DNA of 57,646 bases, counting the filler, from Trichosphaerium sp. ATCC 40318 (Eukaryota > Protista > Tubulinea): assembly GCA_038496445.1 (NCBI GenBank). It is 3 parts of 3 records of this genome, joined end to end, with 100 filler letters (N's around TTAATTAATTAA, not from the genome) between each part and the next. Parts side by side here need not be neighbours in the genome. Positions count along the whole stretch, not along the records: positions 23,360 to 44,865 come from JALMLS010000405.1; 2 more parts are not named here. One strand, given 5' to 3'. This document shows positions 24,290 through 44,774 of the stretch, piece by piece (the first letter of the stretch is position 1; every line of letters begins with the position of its first letter). Position numbers and translations under genes: made by a program. The notes under the pieces were generated by a model. It was given only the letters and a program-made list of their open reading frames with translations, ran no database searches and was not told where the DNA came from.

Positions 24290-24885
24290 CTAGTTAGAGC
24301 GATGAAAATGTACATGTATCCATTTGCCCTTGAAGTACTGTTAGTTGGTCTCAAAAGTAGCTAACAACGTACATCACGCTTCTCAAATACTCTTGTCTCT
24401 TGTCCTGCGCCTGTGACTGGTGCACCGCTACTAGTTACTTTTTGGCGCAATCTTACGTACGAAACTATTCCTACGTTGCCCATAACGCGAACGTGAGGCG
24501 AAGAGATTGTCATGTTTCGCAAAGCAGCGTTACCCTCTTTTTTAGGTGCACCTTTACACAAGTCAGTCCCAGCAAGCGTAAAAAACAAGCTTTGAACGTT
24601 TTTGTGTAGATCAGAGAACGTTTTTCGGTTTAAACAACGAACCTTTCATAAAATCGAAGTAGAACTTGTGAAATGGTAATCCTTCAACGAGGTGCCTGTA
24701 TTGGTACGTTATGAAAAGAAAATTATTTGGTGGCCATGTAAACGCGCATACCCTGATGCCTCAGGTTCAAAGGCTGTTAAACTAGCGTCACAGAGCGTTG
24801 AGTACGTTTCCCAGTCTCCAGTACCAATTGCTTGTATTAGTTTGTGTGTTGCGTCTAAGAGCTCTTGTTTGGCTGCTTCTGTCAT
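24290..24885 (-). CDS. Stand-alone CaMKII association (hub) domain protein, NTF2-like fold
   Basis: MTEAAKQELLDATHKLIQAIGTGDWETYSTLCDASLTAFEPEA|GHLVEGLPFHKFYF...PHVRVMG..GIVSYVRLRQ...ETRVFEKRD..GKWIHVHFHRS*, matching the CaMKII hub consensus; no kinase domain. Confidence 0.9.
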
Positions 24886-24929: not shown

Positions 24930-27424
24930 ATGCAATCTTGGCTCTCACGTTCACGCTCGTGGCTTGCTCGTGCTACTGCACAAACACCACAAAAAAATAA
25001 ACAACGCGTGGCGAGGAGCTTTTCTTCTGGAAGAATTGGCCAACCAACGCATAAAACGCATCCTCACTTGTTGAAAGAAGGAGAACGTAAGTTAGTAACT
25101 TAATTTTCTTTAATGTAACATTTGTTAGTTACGGTAGGCATACAAGCTTCAGAATACGCTCAAAGGCGCCAAAAACTTGCCAATGAGCTTCAAGATGATG
25201 ATGTAGTTGTTTTATACGCGAACAAGCATGCGCAGATGAGCAATGATATCCCGTACGCTTAGAGATCATACTACACGCCTTTTAGCGCTTGAAATAATTT
25301 TTACAACATGAACAATGCCAAACGCCGTTTAACACGCTTCCTCTAGTTACTACTATCATCAAAATGTAGATTTATTGTACTACACAGGGTTTCAAGAGCC
25401 AGAGTCATTTGCTGTACTCGGTATGACGTTTTTTTCAAACCAACTGATTGCCATTTAAAAAACCGCAAAGAGCTACTCTCCACGTTTTTTGATTTACATC
25501 TGACTTTAGAGAAGAGGTCTGGTAAGATCATATTTAACTTGTTCTTACGAGAGTACGATGCTACAAGGTAATTAAGAAGTGTGACATCTCAAACGAAATG
25601 ACAGCAATTTGTATCATTTTGGCTTATAGTTTACTGCAATTTGTTACATTTCTCGTGTAGTAGTGCTAATATGTTTATAAGAGAACTTTGGAATGGTCCA
25701 TGTGCAGGTCTAGATCGCGCAGCTGATATATTTGGTGCTGATAGGGTACGTTAAATGAAGAGAAACTTATCGCTTTGAAACTTATTGTTATTTGTAGGTA
25801 TTTAAAAGCACTGGACCAGATGCTAAGAGAGCTCTTGATGAGCTTGTCAAACACAATAACACAGTTTACGTTAACACACCTATTGGAGGAGCACCAGAGA
25901 GTCAACCAAAAGTATCAATGAGCGAAGAAAACTGGCAAGATGGTGAGTGAAACCAACACGAAATGTTGTTATTTTAATTAACCAACGTTAGGTACGCCAG
26001 TCGTAGAGCGTTTAAGAATGATCAAGTCTCCTGCTGAGATTGAAGTTATGCGTAAAGCAGGTAGCATTTCCGCTAACGCTTTCAAGCAAGTACGTGCTCT
26101 CAACATCTATTACTCAACATTAATGATAAAAAGGTAATGAAAGATACAAAGCATTTTAAGACTGAGCATCAATTATACTCTGCTATAGAGTATGAATGCA
26201 TGAAGAGAGGATGTCAGAGATTAAGTTACCCTCCTGTCGTAGCTAACGGCGACAGTAACTTGATTCTACATTACATTGAAAATGATGATGTTTTAAAGTA
26301 AGCAAAATGAATTGAAAAAAAAATCAGCCTGATAGTTTTTGTTTTAACGTGACCTAGAGACAATAAATTAATTCTAATGGATGCTGGTGGTGAATATTGG
26401 AATTATAGTAGCGATATTACACGAACATGGCCAGTTAATGGCCGCTTCACACCAGCCCAGCGTGAAGTTTATGATGCTGTACTCTCAGTAAGTTTTGTTA
26501 TTTGTGTCACTTCATGATGTTTATCCTTTCTTACTAGGTCAACCAACAAGTAATACAGAGAGTAAAACCAGGTGTAACTTTAAATGAGTTACATTCAGAC
26601 AGTATATTTTCATTTTTGAAGCCAATGCAAGACATGGGATTAGTTAAGGTAAATTCTCCTGTCTTTGAACCTGCTTGAAAAGAAAAGAAAAAAAAAGAAA
26701 AAGAAAAAATGCGTTAATGTTATCTTACAGGAGAGAACAAATGTTCAAGCTTCTTCAATCACAAGGTTTTATGTCCACTCTGTATCACACTACCTTGGTA
26801 CGCTATACTAATATAGTTGGATAGCTGAAATTAACAAATTATCAAAATAGGAATGGACACACATGATACATCTACAATATCTCATAATATACCTCTAGAA
26901 CCTGGAATGGTATGTTGTCTTTCTCTTTCTACGATCTTATTTTTGTTTAATTCTTTCCAAAACACCTATGTAGTTACCTTTAAGACGTTTCTCAAATAAT
27001 GTTTTAAACAACAAACTTTTTCTTTGATTTTTTATTTCTTTTTTACCTTGTAACTCTTTTATTCGTTTAGGTGTTTACAGTTGAGCCTGGTTTATACATA
27101 GGATATGAGGATGATATACCAGAAAGGTACACAACATAATCTTCAACTCTAAAGAATTGTTTGTCGTTCAGTTTTTTCTTGAACTACGTCCGTTTTTCTG
27201 GACTTCTATTTTAAAATGGAAGTTTGTAGTACAGATTTGATTGATTCTTTCAGAAAATTGAGCTTTGTTCTTGTAGAATAGCGCTCTTACACTTTTTCTA
27301 TAGGTTACGCGGTATTGGCGTTAGAATTGAGGATAATATTCTAGTAACAGAGAATGGTTGTGAAGTTCTAACAAAAGAAGCACCAAAGGTTCCGGAAATG
27401 ATAGAACAAATAATGAACAACTAA
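24930..27424 (+). CDS. XPNPEP3: Xaa-Pro aminopeptidase 3 / Icp55 (M24B), probably mitochondrial, multi-exon
   Basis: Arg/Ser-rich presequence, [72 protein letters not shown]. Confidence 0.9.
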
Positions 27425-27799
27425 AATAACGCTAAAAACACCAAAAACGCTGTTTTTTTTTTGATTTTCGGACAAGTTTCTTAGACTTGTTTTTGTAGTT
27501 GTGAGGCTAGCCGTGATTACCTCTATACCTTTACGTTGTGTTTTGGGGCAAACCGACATAGTCCCAGAACGTATCGCGTTGACATGCTCCCAATTTAAGT
27601 AAGCGCAATATATACTTTATAAATCTGTGTACAACACGCACGACGGGGTTTGGTATCAGTTTTGACTCGTTGACATCATCTACGCAATCGACAAATAAGG
27701 CATCAGACCTGAATTCTCCTTTTAACGAGGTAGCGCTACGACTAGTATTAATTAGCGTATTTAACGCTCGTAGGTATTGTGTACAAATAGATAACTACT

Positions 27800-30893: not shown

Positions 30894-31168
30894 TGAAAAA
30901 AAAAACAAAAGAAGAAGTAATTACAGATTGCAGAAGATTAAATCAGTAATTACTTCTGAATCTGTCTCTACAACTTGACTTGTAATATAAATTGTTAGTG
31001 AATATGTTATAAACTTGAGTCTTGTTCAGAAAGAACATAACATAAATATGTCAAAAAAAATAAAAATATATTACTGAAATCAACCACATGCTTTGTTAAG
31101 TTATGGTCACAGTACATGCTTAATAGAAATGAAATATAGTATGTAGGAAACAGCACAGAATAAGAAAA

Positions 31169-34100
31169 ATGAAGCTATCTGATGCTGTAAAAGCTGTTGT
31201 GAAGGAATGGGGTAGCATTAATGCTACCAAGCTGATTATTGCAAAAACAGGTGCAGATGATGCAACTGTATTCATAAACGCACTGTTGCCCCATTACCCT
31301 CATGATTTGCAATTTGCAGCTTTCATTGCAAAATCATTTACAATCGAACGATGCAATTGCAAAAAAGAGTGCTACAAAAAATACAACCGAAATTATTTGT
31401 ATTTTTTGCAATTTTTGGTGTTTTCAATGAACCACCTTGAAAAACGCAAATATCTAATGTTGTTTTTTTCCAAAAAAGCATCTAGCCTCAATCCAAACGT
31501 GTCAAAATGGAATTACTACATACACTATTATGGAGATTTACGACAACAAGTGTGTAAACAGTTTTTCATGAACGTGCATCATTTGACTACACAAAGTATG
31601 AAAACAATGCACTGTTTCAAAGAAACCAACTGTTCTATACCTTTTGATAACAGAGGCAAACACAACAATCGACCACATAGGTACCATTAAACGTTTAATT
31701 GATGTTATGCCGTAAAACGATATCGTTTTAGAGGTATCGTGTGTCATAAAACGATATCGTTTTAGAGCATATTTATACTGTAAAACGATATCGTTTTAGG
31801 ACGTATTTATACTGTAAAACGTCATCGTTTTAGAGTGTACTTGCATCGTAAAACGTCATCGTTTTAGAATGTACTTGCATCGTAAAACGTCATCGTTTTA
31901 GAGTGTACTTGCATTGTAAAACGTCATCGTTTTAGAGTGTACTTGCATTGTAAAACGTCATCGTTTTAGAGTGTACTTGCATCGTAAAACGTCATCGTTT
32001 TAGAGTGTACTTGCATCGTAAAACGTCATCGTTTTACGATGCAAATATTATTGGTTTTATTCAAATTTCTTATACATTATAGAAAGTCTGTGAGCATTCA
32101 AAACAAGATAAGTGAGCATATCTCAAACTACATAGTATGTACATAAGTAATATTAAGTTTATAATTTGTACTAAGGTAGAAAGATCACACTATGCCATAG
32201 CAAAACATAAATTGGTGTTCTTCTTCAAACAAGGTTTGACGTTGCAAACAATTTATGATGAGTTTATATCATCAAATGATGATTTGTATGCAAAAAAGGT
32301 TGAAGGTGTGAGTAAAGATAATGTAGTTTCCCAAAGCACTTTTCGCAGGTACATCACAAGTATAAGAATTACATACAATAAAAATTGACTGGTTTTGTAG
32401 ATATTTCAAAAAAGAAACTGCTGGAAAGTACAAGTTTGGCTGTAGTAGAGAAGATGTATGCAATATTTGCTTTTGGTATAAGTGCCGCTTTGGAGATAGG
32501 ACTTTAAGAAAAGCAGATAGAGATCAATTACATTTAGAACATGATACTCACATTCGTATTGCTGAAAGAAGATCAGAGTTTATGCGGTATGATATGCAAT
32601 CCAAATTGCGATTGCAAAATGAGCAAAATGTCTATTTACTTCCAAATTGGTTGTATTTTGATGTTAACATGAGAGATATTGCTGACACAGAATGTTTTTG
32701 GAGTGCTCAAAAAGAAGATCATTGGTATGAAAATCAACTAAGTTATGAATATGAAGAAGATGAAGATTCAAATGAAGAGTTTGAAGTAAATGCTATTTTG
32801 ATGACTACTGTGAATGAAGCTACAAAAGAGATGAATGCACTAGTATCATGGAAGGGCCTTGAACAAATTCCTTTATTTCATGAGTTATCATTATTTAATA
32901 AGGATGTTTATTACCCTACATGGCATCAATATAACATGTGGAAAAGACATAATTCATCAGTTATTAGTATCGATTATATGCAAATGCTTAGCATGCCTAA
33001 ATTGGCAGATCAACCTCAAATTCAATACTACTTAAGGTACACAAGATTTAGAGGTTTGTTTAATGTAAGTTAGAGCTTTGGCAGTGCAAACTTGTGGTAT
33101 TTATGATTGTGATCAAAAAAAGACTTTTTGCTATCATTGGAATGAATATGAAGCAAGAAGAACTATTCAAGACACTATTGCAGTGTTGTACAGGCACTAT
33201 CAATTATTTATAATAGTTTTAATGTTTGTTAGACATTTGGCTGGTATAAACAGAAAACGTTTTCTGATTGTTTGGGCAGATAATTGTACCTCTCAAAACA
33301 AATGTTGGGAATTGATATTTTTTTATTGTCACTTAGTATATAAAAATGTGTTTCAAGAAGTTACCTTGAACTATCTACGTATTGGCCACACATTTTTACC
33401 TAATGATAGAGCTTTTGGAGTAGTACGAAACAAATTGAAAAAAAGGTATGCTGCTTATGGATAGCTAAACAATCGTAATGTGTGTAGATGTTTAATTTCT
33501 ATGAATGATGTTCAAGAATTGTTTACTGCTTCTGGGCCTAGTGTTGTGGGAGTTAAAATGGAACAAAATAGGTTTAGAGCTACTAAAGAGTTTGTTGCTG
33601 GTTTCAGAAAACCTTCCAAAGACATAAATAAAGTGAATAGAGGCAAAGCAATGACAAATGCTGCAATTATTAGGTAACCAATTTTCCCATCACTTTTACT
33701 TATTTTTCAAAGAATAATTAAAAGCACACATGGCAGAGTACACATGATTACAGAGCATGAAATGCATGCTGGTAAAGAAAGATCTAGAATATTTAATATG
33801 CATTATGTGGATGATCGTGAACCACCATCTGTGTCTTTTAATAGTTTGCCATATTTGTATGGTAAAAAGTCTCATGGCAGTTACAAAGAAGTTCGCTTGA
33901 AAATCAATCCCAAAAAAGCAATAGATATTTATTTGTTAGCAAATAGATATGGTTTGGACACTTCTGAAGACAGTTTGTATCCTAAACCTGAAGATTATGA
34001 TGGTTCAACAGAATATACACCACCAAAAGAAGCAATGGTGTGGTCAGAATTTATACAAGAGCCATTGGCTACATTGTCTTTAGAAAATGCAAGAGCTATA

Positions 34101-34226
34101 GAAGCTTATGAAGTGCAAGAACAAGTGTCTGAAGATAATCAAGAAAGAATGCAAACATTAGCAAATGAAGATATGACTGCTTTTATTAGTACAAGCAGTG
34201 TTTTGAATCGAATTCCGAGATATTAA
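31169..34226 (+). CDS. Sola1-like DDD transposase, spliced, with chromodomain-like insertion
   Basis: Motifs CNCKKEC, VCKQFF, DNRGKHNNRP, SHY, DVCNIC, DYMQMLSMP, YYLR, YHWNE, WADNCTSQNK, GHTFLPNDRAFG. Exons join in frame through GT-AG introns (first intron 31681-32082). Confidence 0.85.
31713..32044. repeat. Tandem array: 10 units, exact 34-bp period, palindromic core AAAACG(AT/TC)ATCGTTTT
   Basis: Units start at 31713, 31747, 31781, 31815, 31849, 31883, 31917, 31951, 31985, 32019; all inside transposase intron 1. Confidence 0.95.
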
Positions 34227-37200
34227 TTTCTATTGGCTTTTTTACGTGCTCTACCTGAACGTCTAGGTACTGTAATCTTTGGTTTTTTAGCCTTAGGTTT
34301 TTTAGCTGATGGAGATAAGCCACGTTTTCTAGGTGTTAATTGGTTGTCATTAGATCTTTGATTTGGACTTGCTCTTTTACCACGTGTATCTGTTCCCTAA
34401 TACTTTTGTTAAATAAAATTGAATTTCTGAAAAATCTTATCACACTCTTTTTGGTTGCACTGGACTGATTGCTGGAGAGCTGGTCATCAATGAATCCAAA
34501 GGCTCTAATATAAGTCAATGTGTTATGATATTGACTATTCAACTAACCACTGTCAGTAGGAAAGCCTAATCCAGTTTGAGAGTCCAAATCAAGTTTCAGT
34601 GGTTCAATTGTTTGTGTCAAATCAATGTAATTTTCACCGTCAACAAATGTGTCTTTTGGAACTTTAAAAAGAAAGTAATCAAAATCACTATTTGAGCCCA
34701 CAGTTATGGAATCAAGGTCTCCTAGTATTCATTAGTGATCAATAAAATAAAGCAGAGGTACCTTCTGTAAGTTTTTGAATCTCTAAGCCGCTGAATTTGA
34801 CAGTACGCGGGGTAGAAACTCCTTCAATTACTGTGTTATCGCCATCTGTATTGTATTCATTAGCATTTTTCCTGTAAGTAATAATTGTACCATTTACATT
34901 CTCATCAAACAAGTCAACACTCATAGCATCATCACCTTCATGAACATGTGTAACTTCTGTTCCATTACCAACACCTGTGCTGTCGCCTTTTCCAGCACCT
35001 GCGTTTTCATCAACAGTTGTGACATTATCATGACGTCTGACGTGGGTTTTGCTACCAACACCTTCATTACCAGCGCTTGTTTTGTCATCAGCTTTTGTTT
35101 TGTTGGCAGCAGCTGTTTCATTATCCGCACTTGCTTTGTCCTTGGTACCTGCTTCATTATTCGCACCCGCCTTGTCCTCGGTACCTGCTTCATTACTCGC
35201 ACCCGCTTTGTCCTCGGTACCTGCTTCGTCATCGGCTTTTGCTTTATTGCCGACACCTGTTTCATTATCGGCACTTTTGTTATCAGCACCTGCTTCGTCA
35301 TCGGCTTTTGTTTTGTTGCCAACAGCTGTTTTGTTATCCGCAATCGTTTCGTTATCGGCGCCTGTTTTGTCATTGACACTTGTTTCGTTACTGGCGCCTG
35401 CTTTGCCTTTGACTTCGTTATTGTTTGCAGCGTCTTCGTCATTGCTATTTTTCTTGCCAACGTTCTTGTTTTTGACTGCATCCACATCTTCATCGGAATC
35501 ACTGGAAATACTCATAGGCGTAATATCACCAGGACGGAGACCGAAACCTAAACAGTTAAGTATTTGTTGTATTATCTACTTTTGGCATACTTTCACTGCT
35601 ATCTTCATCTTTTTCTTGCTTACTTGCATTTTTCATCGTGCTTTCAGCTTCTTTACGAATTAGTGATTCTTGTTCGTCCGCTTCTCTTTGTCTTTTAAGT
35701 TCTTCAGCTTCCTGTTTTTTTTCCTTAACTGCGCTAGGAGTCAACGTATGGTTCTCACAAGGTTTGATAGAGTCTGGAAGACGTTCATACTTGACATGCA
35801 AAGTTGCCACTAAAAAACTATAAGTATGTGATTGATCACAATTACATGCCTATTTTGAGAACCTTGTTTGCAGAATACAGTCTTTCTAAACACTTTGTTA
35901 TTAATGGACTGCAAGCAACTGCTTGAGGTTTCCAAAAGAGTAGTATTTTTGGAAAAAGCGAATTAGAATAGTTTTTCTTTCCAAACAACAGATTCAAATT
36001 GAAGCTTTTCAAGTCACGGAACAAGGCACAGTTTGTCTTTTTGAGTGGATCAGTCAAGTTGTTTTTTTTGCATAATTCTTGTATCTATCACTTATCAGTT
36101 GGTGCTAAAGTGCATTCAACGTACTGTAGTAAGTGCTTTTACAGCATTCATAAAGTTTTTTGCTTGTCCTTTATTTGGATTGCTAGTAAAATACTCACCA
36201 GTAATCGCTTTCATCAACTACTCCAAGTAAGTGAACGCAACGTTGATAATTAAACGTGCCTGTAGTCTTGCTGTTATGTTTTTAGCAAAGCAATTTCGCG
36301 AATAGAAATGATAATCATGTCCATACACATATTTCTTAGTCATTTTTTCTTTCTAGGATAATGAATTAGTAGACAGTTTATAGGAGCTATTGTACCGCTT
36401 CCACTACTCGGCAATGTTCTTTAAATTCTTGTTCTATGCCAATCGGAAAGAGAGAAGCTTTTAAAATCAACCCATAATTTAACACACTCAATATTTTTCC
36501 AATAGAATAATGGTCATCAATATTTTGAAGCTCCTATTGCGCTCAACAATAAACAAATAAACAATAACGAACCGCTATACAAACATCTGAAGGCAAGTAA
36601 TTTTTGAGACTAAATCTAACCCACACTTGTTTGTACTCAGAAAAACCTTCAGTATTTGCGACCAAGTTATCATGTAGCATCTTAGCTCTATCTCTGAAGG
36701 TTTTTAATTTATCGTAATATGTTGGGTTTCCTAACAACAACTTAGTCGCAGGAAAACAACACTGCACATACCAACTTGCATTTGCAACAAGTTTATTTGG
36801 GAACCAACTCGCACCAGACCAAAGAACCCAGCCTGTATGTTAAAAAAGTTTACTGTTGAGAATACGATGTTTGAGATCTTTTGCACCAAACGCGTTTTTT
36901 TAGACCTAAGCATAATTACTACACAGGATATGACATGCGCATACATTAGCGAACTTAAACTCGTGTGTGTTCCATCAATCACTGCAATGGTGGTTAAATC
37001 ACCCATTGGAAGCCAAGCAACAGTCATACATCTGTCTTGTATTTTTTTGGTAGCTGAATGTGTCAATAAAATTAATACGTGTAGTTACGTACTACTTCTC
37101 TCACTAAACGCCATTTTGTCTTTGAAGTTACTTGCAGAAAATTCACGTATAGCGATGAAACATGAGATATCTGAAAATCTCCAGTCACGGTCAAAGACAA

Positions 37201-38557
37201 TATCATGTTCAATGTTGGTTTCACAATGTGCTGAAACCTTTGAGTCTCCATCTATGGTGATGTTATTGAGTAATTTGGTAGGCACTTTCTCAATCTCCAT
37301 CTCTTTGAACTCAGCCTTATAAGACGATTTTTTTTTGGCACCTCTACATTAAGTTAAAAAAATAACTTACACGCTCGTACTCTATCAGTGCATCCAATTG
37401 CACATCACAAGACACCAGAATAGAACTTCTAAAAAGCAGCGCTGCAACATATAAACCATAATGAGAAGTGCCATCATTGAAGCAAAAAGCTGCTTCAAAC
37501 ATATCAAAATGATACAACAATTGGTAAACAACCACTTTCGTGGTTAAATTATAAATAAACATCGTTTTCTCCTCATCAGATGGTTCATCTACATCTGTTA
37601 AGGATGGTTTAAACCAACACTCAGCATCGAGCAAGTCAGAAGCATTTTGTAAAAAAGATTCCACATTCTTGACACCAATCTCCTAACAAAAGTACTAAGA
37701 TTCAAAAAAACATGTACTACATCTGTACCTTTTCACAGTTGTAGTTTTGTACAGCCAGCGTTTCCTTCAATTCTGCTATTGAACTCAACAAACTTTTCTT
37801 TATGTCTCGTGTCATGATGTGTGTTCCTGGTAGTACACCATACACAGCTGTAGGTGTACTCACCAATGCTCTTAAACACATTAACAACAGCAACAATATC
37901 AATACGTACTCAAAACGCAGTTCAGCAGTAGACTTTAACCGATCTGCTTTGTGTTTTTCAATATCTGGAGGAGCATCGTCAGACAGTATCTCCAAACGTT
38001 CCACAAGCTGCCTTGGATAGGCTGAAAACACTTCTAAAATGTATGCATAAGTACATACAATAGTTTGTTTTCAGTCATCATGAAAAACGATATCGTTTTA
38101 CAGGGTCTAAAGTGAAAAAACGATATCGTTTTACAGAATCCGATATGATCTATGACATGAAAAAACGATATCGTTTTATGAAAATCCGAAAATGATAAAA
38201 CGATATCGTTTTTCCATGTGAGTCATTCACAAAACGATATCGTTTTCTCGTGTGAATCCCTCATAAAACGATATCGTTTTAAGACATTAAAAAAGGATAA
38301 AACGATATCGTTTTATAGCAAAAAATGGTTTAAAGCGTTGCGCAAGAAGAATCTACTTTGCAAACGCAAATTACACACCAATTCAAATATGGTGTTGTTT
38401 TAACCAAAGCGCATAGCATACGTAGTACGCCCATGGATTGAAGAGGCGTTTTGAAATAAAAAACAACAAATACTAGTAAAAGAAACATATAGTACTAGTA
38501 CGCACCTTCCAAAGCATTGAAACGGCGATAGAGTGGTTTTTTCTTCCTTGAGGTCAT
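34223..38557 (-). CDS. Large spliced accessory gene of the transposon, function unknown
   Basis: MTSRKKKPLYRRFNALE|VFVVFYFKTPLQSMGVL|QVFSAYPRQLVERL... joins in frame over GT-AG introns. Contains an acidic 12-aa repeat region and a basic tail ...PRKRGLSPSAKKPKAKKPK...RKKANRN*. Confidence 0.7.
35060..35400 (-). repeat. Coding ~36-bp (12-aa) degenerate repeats (NEAGTEDKAGAx)
   Basis: Visible in ORF 34739..35515(-); explains the multiple overlapping shadow ORFs there. Confidence 0.85.
38084..38314. repeat. Array of 7 perfect 16-bp palindromes AAAACGATATCGTTTT with non-identical spacers
   Basis: Cores at 38084, 38117, 38162, 38197, 38231, 38265, 38299 (spacing 33, 45, 35, 34, 34, 34); inside intron 2 (38034-38421) of the accessory gene. 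Confidence 0.95.
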
Positions 38558-39666
38558 TGCAGTCGAAAGTAGTACTATTAAGTTATTTGTTAAGTGTTGG
38601 AATTAACGTTCAACAAAAACCATAGACCAACAGATAAACAGTACTATCATGTGACTTACAGGTCTATGTGTATGTTCTATAACATACAAAAACAATTGAC
38701 AGACATCAAACAGAATTAGAGCACAATTTGCACCATAAGTGCAAACGCAATGAAAGTGATGCAATTATTTTAAGGATGTTTTTATTGCATTAATAGACAA
38801 CACGTATGTGTGGTGTTCCATTACAAGCATTGAAATGGCCACAACTTTAGTTATGTTCTTTCTGAACGAAACTCACTTGTCATAAAACAAGAATGTTTGG
38901 CTTTTTTTTTTCAAAGAATTCCCACGAAGTTTTGTTCCCACTCTTATCGTTATTCTTACAGGGCTGGTTTAAAAACAGTTAGATCATGTAATAGTAGAAA
39001 TGGATCTACTGATGATAAAAAGGGAGATGAAGCCCTGTTACCGATTTTAGAAGCATTTTGAGTCGAAACAATTGAACTTTCGAAGAAAAAATAAAGTCGG
39101 CACTCTCCTTTTTATCATCTATCACTGTTGCACAAGTACTGAATAAGAAACGTTATGCAATGAATTCACTATAAGGTTGATGTCCCAACTTACTCCATCC
39201 AATATCTTATAATAGTAAACACATAGTAGGTTGCAAGTGACATTGCGCTTGTAGTTTATATGAAGTCCTATCTGGAAATTGTAATTTTATTCAATAATAT
39301 TTGTCGCACAATATTGCTTGGAAATAAGCGCTGGTTCAGATGGACATTTGGGTTAGGGGTGCTGAATAATACTTTGTTATTACAACTAGTTAGTATGTTG
39401 AAACAAAACTTGATAAGTGACACATGTTCATGTCAGTCATTCAGCAATGTCTTTGTTCAAAAGATAGTAGTACAGTATTTCACAGTCTCATTGAATGATT
39501 AACATTGGTTGCGCAATACTACATCCTAAATGTACTTATAGTAATATCACAGGTACTTACACAATTGAATTCATAAGTTTATTGTAGTGTCACTTTGATT
39601 TGTGACGTTATTATTTATATATACAAGTTCCTTTTAATTCTTTTTCTAGTTCTTGTTACTACAGTT

Positions 39667-40878
39667 TCAATTACGTTTATATATATGTTTTGTCCCAACA
39701 AGCGCTTTGATGCCTTCATTGGTTACTGGAGTATAGTTGAGGTAAATAGTATGAACGCCAACAAGTGCTTTAACACCTTCATCTGTTACTGAAGTGTTAT
39801 TGAGGTTAATAGTATGAACACCAGCAAGTGGTTTGACACCTTCATCTGTTACTAAAGTGTTATCGAGGTAAATAATATGAACACCAGCAAGTGCTTTGAC
39901 ACCTTCATCTGTTACTAAAGTGTTATTGAGGTTAATAGTATGAACTCCAGCAAGTGCTTTAACACCTTCATCTGTCACTACGGTACGATAAAGGCTAATA
40001 TAATGAACTCCTGCAAGAGCTTTGACACCTTCATCAGTTACTTTAGTATCGCCAAGGTGAATAGTATGAACACCAGAAAGTGCTTTAACGCCTTCATCTG
40101 TTACTGAAGTGCTATTGAGGTTAATTTTATGAACGCCAGAAAGTGCTTTTACGCCTTCATCTGTTACTGAAGTGTAACTGAGACAAATGGTATGAACGCC
40201 AGCGAGTGCTTTAACGCTTTTGGCAGTTACTAAAGCGTTGGAAAGACCAATAGTATGAACGCCAGCAAGTGGTTTGACACCTTCATCTGTTACTGAAGTG
40301 TTATTGAGGTAAATAGTATGAACGCCAGCAAGTGCTTTAACACCTTCATCTGTTACTGAAATGCTATTGAGGTAAATAGTATGAACGCCAGCAAGTGCTT
40401 TAACACCTTCATCTGTTACTGAAGTGTTATTGAGGTAAATAGTATGAACGCCAGCAAGTGCTTTAATGCCTTTGTCAGTTACTGAAGTGGATTCAAGTAC
40501 AATAGCATGAACGCCAGCAAGTGCTTTAATGCCTTCATCAGTTACTGTAGCACATTCGAGGTCTATAGTATGAACTCCAGCAAATTGTTTGATGCTGGTT
40601 TCGTCAAAATCACTTGAGCTAAGGTCTATCCAGGTGTTTTTCAGAATCCCACGATGTTTTACTACTGATTTTACTTGGTCTACAGTTTTAACCCTGATAG
40701 CGGTGTATCCGATAACGTCGTGAACAATAGAAGCGAATAAACGACAGGTTTGACAAGCTGCAAATCGTGATTTGAATGATGTTTGAAGCAAAATATGCGT
40801 TAATATCTCCGTAGGTAGATGCAACAAATTATTGCGTGCGATGTTGTCGATTGTATAACGCGTTGAAATAGGAAGCAT
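39667..40878 (-). CDS. F-box + leucine-rich repeat protein (about 14 x 21-aa repeats), single ORF
   Basis: F-box LLHLPTEILTHILLQT...CQTCR; repeats VTDEGVKALAGVHTIxLxxTx. Confidence 0.9.
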   Translation of the reverse strand: MLPISTRYTIDNIARNNLLHLPTEILTHILLQTSFKSRFAACQTCRLFASIVHDVIGYTAIRVKTVDQVKSVVKHRGILKNTWIDLSSSDFDETSIKQFAGVHTIDLECATVTDEGIKALAGVHAIVLESTSVTDKGIKALAGVHTIYLNNTSVTDEGVKALAGVHTIYLNSISVTDEGVKALAGVHTIYLNNTSVTDEGVKPLAGVHTIGLSNALVTAKSVKALAGVHTICLSYTSVTDEGVKALSGVHKINLNSTSVTDEGVKALSGVHTIHLGDTKVTDEGVKALAGVHYISLYRTVVTDEGVKALAGVHTINLNNTLVTDEGVKALAGVHIIYLDNTLVTDEGVKPLAGVHTINLNNTSVTDEGVKALVGVHTIYLNYTPVTNEGIKALVGTKHIYKRN

Positions 40879-42091: not shown

Positions 42092-42600
42092 ATGTCCCAA
42101 GATTGTACTGTAGAGGCCAGATTATGTAATGATGGGATATTTAAGTTACCTACCAAATTATTACACCAGATTATAGACCTTTCCGCAGCGGTATACGTAT
42201 TGTGGCCGCTACTTTGTTATCAAGCTGCTGTAACAAGTAGATTTACTTTTAACTTGGAGAAACATGGCAAATGGATTGGACATTGAATGTGTTCATTTGA
42301 CGAAGGAAAAATGGTAGGATCATACAAAAGTTGGTACACTAATGGCGTGTTGAAAGAAACTTGCTTTTATGTCAATGGAGTCCGTGAAGGAGAGAATATA
42401 GCTTACTATGGTTGTAATCCTTACATACGTAGGGGTCATAACGGTCAATATATTAAGCCCTTGAAGCCTTTGCTAAAGAGAAAGTGCTTTTTTAGGAACG
42501 GATTACTTCATGGCGAAGTAAAGAGATGGTACAACAATGGTCGACTACAAAGACATTGCTTTTACGTTGATGGTAAGCTAGAAGGAGAGTATAAAACCCT
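42092..42600 (+). pseudogene. F-box-like + MORN-variant repeat gene with an in-frame TGA
   Basis: IFKLPTKLLHQII, TGA at 42284-42286, then same frame: YKSWYTNGVLKETCFYVNGVREG, HGEVKRWYNNGRL..FYVDGKLEGEYK. Confidence 0.65.
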
Positions 42601-43275
42601 TTTCTTTTATTGTTCTTTTTTTAATTTAATTTGTAGATCGTTCAGTAATCTTATTTTAAGCTATTTCCGTCCTATTTGGAATAGGGCAAGTACCAAAATG
42701 ACTCCTTCCTCTGCAGAATCAAGTGTGTCTACTACAGAAACGCCCATGAATAATTTAATAAAACAGCAACAAGCAATACAAACTGTAGAATAAAAACGAC
42801 AAATGTAATTTGTGTCATTAGTACGTAATATGTGAAACACAGAGTATGCTATGATCAAGTTGCGAAGTCAGTTTTGATAATACGAACGTATCTCATAGTT
42901 GCAACATTCAAGCACTAGAGTGTAGGTGCATAAAAGCTCTTGGACAGCGCATGTAATCTCACATACTGAAATACGACTTCAGATCTTTTGTCTTTGTAGT
43001 CAAACTACAATTGCCAATCAGACCAGCGTGCTTACCTTTTCAAATATAACATTTCCAATAGCAACATGCACGCAGCACCAGCCAACAAGCTACTTTGACA
43101 CATCGAAATATTTCCGCACGTGATAAACCGACCTATGCCTCAAAGCACGTGTAGGAGAGGTCATCGAACAATTTTAGCAATTAACAAGGATACGAAACTA
43201 AGCCTCAGACAAAGCTCGAATTAATCAAAGCATGGCGAGGCTAAACGGTCATAAGCAATCCAGTGTTATTCGTAA

Positions 43276-44774
43276 ATGTCGTCAAGCACTTTCTTGTTAA
43301 CATTTGAAGCACTACCAAACGAAATGGAGTCAACAGCAAGGTCAGTATTGACAATACATCTTTCCAAACTCTTGATTGCTAAAACCACGCAACAGATACG
43401 AAAATGAACCCACACGCCTTGTGGATCTCCCACCAGAACTATTAGCAATGCTTTTGGAGAAAACAACCGATAAAACGCGCTTCACCGTTGTAGCTTGTTG
43501 TCTAACACTCTCATCTATTATTCATAACATTATTGGGTTTAAAAGAGCAAATCTAACCAGAGTGTCAATGGTTTCATCTGTCGTCAATGCCAGGCGTACT
43601 TAAGAACACGAGACTTAAAATAAACCTCAAGTTTCTTAAATACGATAAAGCCGTAGAAGCTTTAAAGTATATTGAAGGTGTAAAACACGTTGACTTGTCA
43701 CGTGGCATGGTAGTAGCTAAAGGACTAAAACACTTGTCCGGTGTTCATACTATTAGCTTGTCTTCAACAAAACTTAGTGGTTGGGGTCTAAAGTACTTGT
43801 CTGGCGTTCATGACATCAACCTTTCAAGTACCAAAATACGTGATCAACACTTAAAACATATATCTGGTGTCCATACAATAGATTTATCTAACACACGCGT
43901 AACAGAGTTAGCAGCACTTTCTGGAGTCCATACAATAGATTTATCTAACACACGTGTAACAGAGTTAGCAGCACTTTCTGGAGTTCATACGATTAACTTG
44001 TCACGTACAAAAATAAGTGGTTCTCAACTGACGCATCTTGCTGGTGTTCATACGATTGACTTATCTCTTACACAAGTCGAAGATGTAAGCGCTCTCGCTG
44101 GAGTCTACTCTATAAACTTGAGACGTACAAAAGTAACTGAAAGTGTAAAGGCATTGGCTGGTGTTCATACTATCAATCTCAATGACACTAAGGTAACTGA
44201 TGAAGGTGTTAAGGCTCTTGCTGGTGTTCATACTATAAGCCTCGCTTATACTAAGGTAAGCGATGACGGTGTAAGCGCTCTTGCTGGAGTTTATTGTATA
44301 AACTTGCGACGTACAAAAGTAACAGATGAAAGTGTAAAGGCATTGGCTGGTGTTCATACTATCAATCTCAATGACACTAGGATAACTGATGAAGGTATTA
44401 AAGCACTTGCTGGCGTTCATGAGATATCTCTGAATTGTACTAGAGTTACAAATGCCGGTGTAAAAGCTTTAGCTGGTGTTCATACAATTAATCTCAGGTA
44501 CACCAAGGTAACAGATGAAGGGGTACTTGCACTTATAGGTGTTAGTAATATACACCTTACAAAGACTGCTGTATCAGATGATGTAAAGAAAGCTGTTAAT
44601 GCCACAATCCATCAGTGGTATGTAGATAAAATGTTAACTTTCGGCACCTTTATTTTTTGTCAATTTTCTGTCAATGTGCTTTTTGATCACTTTGAATTTA
44701 TTGAATTTGGCGGGTACTGTAAAACACAGTGCTTCTCAATATTGTATTCATCCATGTTGACATATGTGATGTGA
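43276..44774 (+). pseudogene. F-box + LRR paralog with an apparent 1-bp frameshift near 43590 (or assembly error)
   Basis: F-box LVDLPPELLAMLL and LRRs lie in different frames; the paralog at 39667 reads VVKHRGILKNT continuously across the same point. Confidence 0.7.

Follow-up and report, generated by a model that had tools for sequence, protein, structure and literature searches.

The window, a stretch of 57,646 nucleotides (three parts, filler included) from the genome of Trichosphaerium sp. ATCC 40318 (GCA_038496445.1), contains within the 21.5-kb piece that comes from JALMLS010000405.1 (positions 23,360 to 44,865) a two-gene transposon of the Sola superfamily. One gene encodes the transposase and the other an accessory protein, and each holds an array of short palindromes in a long first intron, as observed in the transposase gene and predicted in the accessory gene. 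The explanation put forward here, with belief and doubt evenly balanced, is that the transposase acts at the terminal inverted repeats (TIRs) and that a probably ParB-derived protein of the element binds the arrays near both ends and so marks the element. The element is best explained as a member of a protist lineage of Sola1-type elements with chromodomain-insert transposases. The two arrays are located as follows.

31714-32035, no strand: left array, 10 units with a 34-bp period, in intron 1 of the transposase gene
38084-38314, no strand: right array, 7 perfect palindromes separated by unrelated spacers, in the predicted first intron of the accessory gene

Ten of the 17 units are the perfect 16-bp palindrome AAAACGATATCGTTTT. 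The left array begins with three of them and continues with seven homogenised two-base variants, AAAACGTCATCGTTTT, in which the palindrome is imperfect, and the units of the right array follow one another at 33, 45, 35, 34, 34 and 34 bp. The spacers between perfect units are 0.28-0.30 identical, which equals background, and mostly 18 bp long, and the core is invariant. Fixed cores with background-level spacers of kept length are the pattern expected of selected symmetric protein-binding sites, suggesting that the arrays are selected, sequence-specific, symmetric candidate binding sites. The expected number of chance copies of the 16-mer in the 21.5-kb piece is 3e-5. An initial annotation of this DNA had proposed a check for the palindrome outside the element, and no copy with up to three mismatches is found in the piece outside the arrays, the TIRs included. 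The same annotation had described both arrays as ~34-bp repeats of one palindrome within introns; the left period and, under the gene models, the intronic position of both arrays are as described, but the palindrome is perfect in only the ten units mentioned and the right periods range from 33 to 45 bp. Its array positions, ~0.7-1.0 kb and ~0.56-0.79 kb from the ends, agree with the measured distances of 697-1018 bp (left) and 560-790 bp (right). A coding function of the arrays is rejected because stops occur in all six frames at both of them. Nine left units (31731-32007) contain an acceptor-like TTTTAG, most with a donor-like GTAC three bases on, and this array could represent a series of ~31-bp mini-introns separated by 3-nt microexons, or a set of cryptic splice sites.

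The element that carries the arrays is delimited by the following features.

31017-38874: Sola-type element, 7,858 bp, with TIRs and ACTT duplication, apparently intact
31013-31016, no strand: left target-site duplication ACTT
31017-31041, plus strand: left TIR, 25 bp, begins GAG, 23/25 identical to the right TIR
38850-38874, minus strand: right TIR, 25 bp, 23/25 identical to the left TIR
38875-38878, no strand: right target-site duplication ACTT, matching the left ACTT

TIRs and a 4-bp target-site duplication, two marks of the Sola superfamily, are both present, as the initial annotation had claimed, and the termini are GAG...CTC. To judge from its sequence, the element is apparently an autonomous cut-and-paste transposon that is intact to all appearance. 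Sola1 elements are described as preferring AWWT (or AWDT) targets (PMC3845634). The window target ACTT, a single insertion, departs from this at position 2, and the flanks of related elements are ATAT and ATCT. An Rfam search gave no match.

The transposase gene runs inward from the left end.

31169-34226, plus strand: Sola1-type DDD (three-aspartate) transposase, 8 exons, 799 codons, from DUF7869 and exon-wise homology to loci L001-L003 and L031-L033
31169-31680, 32083-32134, 32176-32348, 32401-33036, 33074-33187, 33233-33445, 33488-33673 and 33713-34226, plus strand: transposase exons
31681-32082, plus strand: long intron 1, 402 bp
32972-33407, plus strand: catalytic triad, D 32972, D 33279 and D 33405, from alignments with relatives
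32777-32950, plus strand: degenerate chromodomain directly ahead of the first catalytic Asp, from a clade profile against PDB

The spliced transposase of the initial annotation holds up as an eight-exon frame with consistent phases and no internal stop. Pfam DUF7869 matches its catalytic region (E 9e-15), the second catalytic Asp is invariant in the alignment of relatives, and a search with the transposase retrieved 546 related proteins. Intron 1 is backed by homology, as the close relative L003 has an intron at the same codon and the exons on either side align. Exon 5 ends at 33187, or at 33193 if intron 5 has a GC donor, which is favoured by homology to P0003. The catalytic motifs are presumably of Sola1 type, from which the subgroup assignment is taken, and the GAG..CTC termini may recall Sola2 or Sola3. 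In a quick tree built from unlabelled relatives, without reference Sola1, Sola2 or Sola3 transposases, the window transposase forms one clade with P0003, P0002 and P0027 (Shimodaira-Hasegawa-like approximate likelihood ratio test, SH-aLRT, 97); L001 and L032 fall in the 97%-supported clade with the window, and the wider chromodomain-bearing group is weakly supported (SH-aLRT 78). Neither the transposase, nor the partner gene, nor the palindrome pair turned up in scans of viral and prokaryotic collections, and three matches to the 18-mer of the TIR are attributed to chance, all of them missing the GAG terminus. A metagenome scan retrieved mostly distant Sola loci, probably from animals. The AlphaFold model of transposase exon 4 is of low confidence (predicted local distance difference test, pLDDT, 43), and Foldseek was uninformative. 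The observed/expected CpG ratio is 0.34 in the transposase region (31169-34226), compared with 0.72 for the accessory gene and 0.8-0.9 for the flanking DNA, and the low value may be a trace of past methylation or reflect codon bias.

The chromodomain-like insert noticed in the initial annotation is supported by a profile built solely from the window sequence and those of four close kin, known chromodomains being left out. This clade profile matches the CDY1 chromodomain in PDB (E 3e-4), and 10 of its 11 matches are chromodomains, the match being confined to the N-terminal half of the domain. In agreement with this, Pfam Chromo is clear at this position of the transposase in P0004, P0005 and L009 and is found in the close relative L002 with an E value of 0.008. 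The window exon taken singly has no Pfam match, and a hidden Markov model from two chromodomain sequences did not detect the insert. Phe and Trp of the aromatic cage are present in the window and the third position is Leu (WKGL), where four close kin have Tyr. Because of this Leu the window chromodomain is regarded as degenerate, and with the third cage aromatic lost it may be vestigial. The P0004 transposase has a SAP-like stretch (E 1e-4) beside its canonical chromodomain.

The accessory gene runs inward from the right end on the opposite strand.

34223-38557, minus strand: accessory gene, 18-19 predicted exons, ~1,070-1,090 aa
34223-34226: overlapping stops of both genes in one TTAA, from the sequence
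38034-38505, minus strand: predicted long first intron, 472 bp, or 388 bp with exon 38472-38422 included
35063-35396, minus strand: coding 18/36-bp repeat, a linker rich in D, E, K, A and G
36945-37200, minus strand: putative degenerate ParB/Srx-like domain, with the motif IAVIDGTHT at 36962-36991, interrupted by an intron

The spliced minus-strand gene facing the transposase gene, as proposed initially, is thereby recovered. A codon model trained on the transposase favours the predicted frame in 15 of the 18 exons tested, and the gene model requires two GC-AG introns (36259 and 35849). The encoded protein would have a basic N-terminus, a globular part, an acidic low-complexity repeat and a basic C-terminal tail. 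The small exon 38472-38422 scores poorly in the codon model, and therefore the 472-bp first intron is likelier than the 388-bp one; the right array is intronic under both models. This long intron is a prediction from sequence that no homologue or transcript spans. Of the two long introns of ~400 and ~390 bp reported initially, the transposase intron is thus as stated and the accessory intron is probably longer; the other introns, given there as ~40-50 bp, measure 37-52 bp in the transposase gene and 33-49 bp in the accessory gene. A start of the accessory gene at the ATG right after the right array is rejected because it splices out of frame.

The spliced gene models were searched exon by exon. 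No homologue was found with accessory exon 37383-37682, the accessory exons taken singly gave nothing significant in Pfam, PHROG and NCBIfam, and tblastn of them against 33 related loci gave no match. Against three ParB profiles the IAVIDGTHT exon scores best among the 19, at E 0.04-0.13, which is not above the six-frame background, and the Arg of the DGxHR motif, expected to be conserved, is replaced (IDGTHT). A methyltransferase motif (DPPY-type, FxGxG) was not seen in the accessory exons, and exon-wise library searches gave no match that would indicate a fused DNA-modifying domain (methyltransferase or 2OG-oxygenase), the short exons giving such searches low power. The likeness of exon 34549-34719 to the last exon of L009 failed a shuffle test (p 0.23), and P0001 as a homologue is a repeat artefact.

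Comparison with relatives shows that much of the design of the window element is inherited. All parts together are seen only in the window, and the contigs of most relatives are short. L001 and L032 have 48-bp-period arrays of different palindromes in the intron that immediately precedes the SHY exon; in the window's transposase gene the array lies one intron further upstream. In L031 a second gene with a basic tail converges on the transposase gene and, just as in the window, the two stops overlap in TTAA (1489-1492), supporting the earlier claim that the second gene belongs to the element, and L009 likewise has a convergent gene. Two further Sola1-type loci have ParB-like partner genes.

L004, 109-6388: complete two-gene Sola relative with 45-bp TIRs, divergent genes and ~122-bp-period repeats between the genes
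L043, 3091-5637: ParB-like gene of 848 aa that follows, in the same orientation, a Sola-type transposase of another lineage

The TIRs of L004, which is more distant than the close kin, share TTCGTTCA, and a different right flank in L005 indicates more than one insertion site. Its partner gene is ParB-like by PHROG 3264 (E 5e-5) and by SerK/SbnI and phage ParB matches, with an intact IDGNHR motif; the AlphaFold model of this open reading frame (ORF) is of low confidence (pLDDT 44), and Foldseek was uninformative. The L043 partner is ParB-like at E 2e-5, a value for that one protein, and has lost the motif Arg (VHGVHS), as in the window. Short repeats occur at 5990-6265 of L043, and a near-perfect 23-bp inverted repeat at 675-745 of L044 lies upstream of another Sola-type transposase. 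L003 has one perfect 16-bp palindrome with arms AAAAC...GTTTT at 676-691, in its short intron 1 over the branch point and acceptor, which is possibly the seed of an array or a chance occurrence.

These observations can be joined in a mechanism in which the transposase would cut at the short TIRs and excise the element, and the palindromes would be double-stranded DNA sites for a dimeric protein encoded by the element. The most likely reader of the palindromes would be the accessory protein as a degenerate ParB-like DNA-binding or clamp protein, which, loaded on the array near each end, would tag the element as self, so that both promoters would be kept from host silencing or the ends would be gathered for the transposase. 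The first introns would house the arrays without a coding cost, and the start of both genes ~150-320 bp from the ends may be the reason why the arrays came to lie there. Transcribed into RNA, the arrays would form long hairpins that may leave the long introns spliceable in a genome of ~40-bp introns, and through the chromodomain, histone methylation would influence where binding or insertion takes place. Support for this mechanism comes from the ten exact palindromes with divergent spacers of kept length, present in both arrays and absent from the rest of the 21.5 kb, from the arrays of L001 and L032, the convergent genes of L031 and L009 and the ParB-like partners in L004 and L043, and from published parallels (PMC12477816; bioRxiv 10.1101/2025.02.11.637652). 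A more specific proposal, of a protist Sola1 clade with a ParB-derived clamp, family-variable parS-like arrays in both first introns and a transposase whose chromodomain reads histone marks, is offered tentatively, as possible rather than probable.

Several points weigh against this mechanism. The seven variant left units are no longer perfectly symmetric and have been homogenised in the manner of a minisatellite, and the element is seen once in the genome. The ParB-like identity of the window accessory protein is a reasoned guess from one short motif and its context, and comparison of the accessory exons with ParB, with the L004 or L043 partner and with all libraries gave nothing significant. 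In L003, whose transposase is ~50% identical, intron 1 lies at the same codon, is ~60 bp long and has no array, and L033 has a clear chromodomain and, on its contig, neither an array nor a convergent second gene, which weakens an obligatory module. The initial annotation had seen arrays, insert and accessory protein as one module that might pair the ends or tether the element, and had asked whether kin keep both arrays and the second gene. The insert, the second gene and the binding-site-like nature of the arrays stand, and arrays in L001 and L032 and a second gene in L031 are found, but obligatory linkage is weakened by L003 and L033.

Subterminal repeats bound by the transposase are common in eukaryotic DNA transposons. 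The arrays could accordingly be transposase sites that pair the ends in the style of hAT, CACTA or pogo, the second gene having another role. Their roughly symmetric placement 0.56-1.0 kb from the ends and the shortness of the TIRs agree with this. However, transposase-bound subterminal motifs usually echo the TIR, the palindrome has no copy in the TIRs within three mismatches, and L003, with a transposase ~50% identical, is arrayless at that intron. This alternative is unlikely. A neutral or selfish minisatellite nature of the arrays, or their expansion in introns as sites of a host transcription factor, with the second gene as a passenger, is rather improbable: the left array shows recent tandem homogenisation, array sequence varies among relatives and L003 and L033 have no arrays, but slippage alone cannot give identical cores and randomised spacers at sites 6 kb apart, and a second gene with an overlapping stop is kept in another organism (L031). 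Least probable is an action of the arrays as RNA, either as hairpins that shorten or regulate long introns or as cryptic splice sites that hold transposase expression down. Compared with shuffled sequences, both long introns form far more stable folds (z -14.9 and -10.7), and the TTTTAG sites of the nine left units score 4.5-6.0 against 6.6 for the true acceptor with GTAC just downstream. But good folding is a property of any palindrome array, so that these z-scores are not discriminating; acceptors of this kind are missing from the sense strand of the right array; and the exact sequence kept in ten units with unrelated spacers and no compensatory changes indicates sequence-specific recognition.

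Binding of the arrays by a ParB-derived protein of the element would resemble plasmid ParB/parS systems such as SopB/sopC of F, in which tandem repeats with a fixed palindromic core are read by an element-encoded protein. The window element differs from these in having no ParA partner, a replaced ParB motif Arg and a eukaryotic cut-and-paste context. In the VANDAL/VANC anti-silencing system, as cited in the Bostrychia paper, tandem fixed-core repeats are likewise read by an element-encoded protein. Compared with Sola1 as described (Bao et al. 2009 via PMC3845634 and PMC4455052), the window element is alike in its DUF7869 DDD transposase, short TIRs and 4-bp A..T duplication, and is distinguished by ACTT, the chromodomain insert, the second gene and the internal palindrome arrays.

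The initial annotation had regarded Sola elements as generally transposase-only and the architecture as a candidate for an undescribed one, and neither claim is supported (PMC12477816; bioRxiv 10.1101/2025.02.11.637652), because a two-gene Sola is already known from Ectocarpus Sola1-1_Ec32 and a ParB-like gene alongside palindrome arrays from red-algal Plavaka. In Sola1-1_Ec32, an opposite-strand gene encodes a 1,104-aa ParB-like and methyltransferase protein, for which binding and modification of its own element were proposed (PMC12477816). This element shares with the window the Sola1 type, a 4-bp duplication and an opposite-strand accessory gene of ~1,100 aa, but it is 21.5 kb long with 282-bp TIRs and a visibly different transposase lineage, and its ParB is fused to an N4C/N6A methyltransferase, of which no motif is seen in the window exons; arrays or a chromodomain are not mentioned in the available text. 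In red-algal Plavaka (EnSpm), a ParB-like PAG3 gene adjoins tandem inverted-repeat arrays and self-binding was proposed (bioRxiv 10.1101/2025.02.11.637652). Plavaka belongs to another superfamily and has a three-gene cassette, in which PAG3 carries a putative 2-oxoglutarate (2OG) oxygenase domain, and its arrays adjoin the gene, whereas those of the window are paired in introns of both genes. In the literature searched, with Repbase Reports and most subscription papers outside its coverage, neither intron-hidden paired arrays nor chromodomain-bearing Sola transposases were found.

In 2025, transposon ParB-like proteins were proposed to bind their own element, no binding site being shown in these sources (PMC12477816; bioRxiv 10.1101/2025.02.11.637652). 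The 7.9-kb element supplies an unusually clean candidate site, a 16-bp palindrome that does not vary while its spacers are randomised, which makes the self-binding hypothesis directly testable, and the different palindromes of relatives make the specificity of protein for site testable by swapping. The chromodomain in the DDD transposase of several protist Sola lineages suggests chromatin-guided targeting, as in chromoviral integrases. If the self-recognition module is real, these compact intact systems would allow the role of eukaryotic transposon ParB-like proteins to be probed.

The element is flanked by host genes on an intron-dense contig of ~36% GC with introns of ~40 bp, which is protist-like and not human; exact look-ups of its ORFs in the protein collections gave no match. 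To its right, 39667-40878 and 43376-44774 form a divergent gene pair with 21-aa leucine-rich repeats, ~72% alike as inverted repeats; the gene at 39667-40878 also has an F-box, and a MORN-variant ORF lies between the two at 42287-42793. On the other side, an ORF with a CaMKII association domain is found at 24361-24588, and a multi-intron gene at ~25900-27430 resembles, by eye, Xaa-Pro aminopeptidase.

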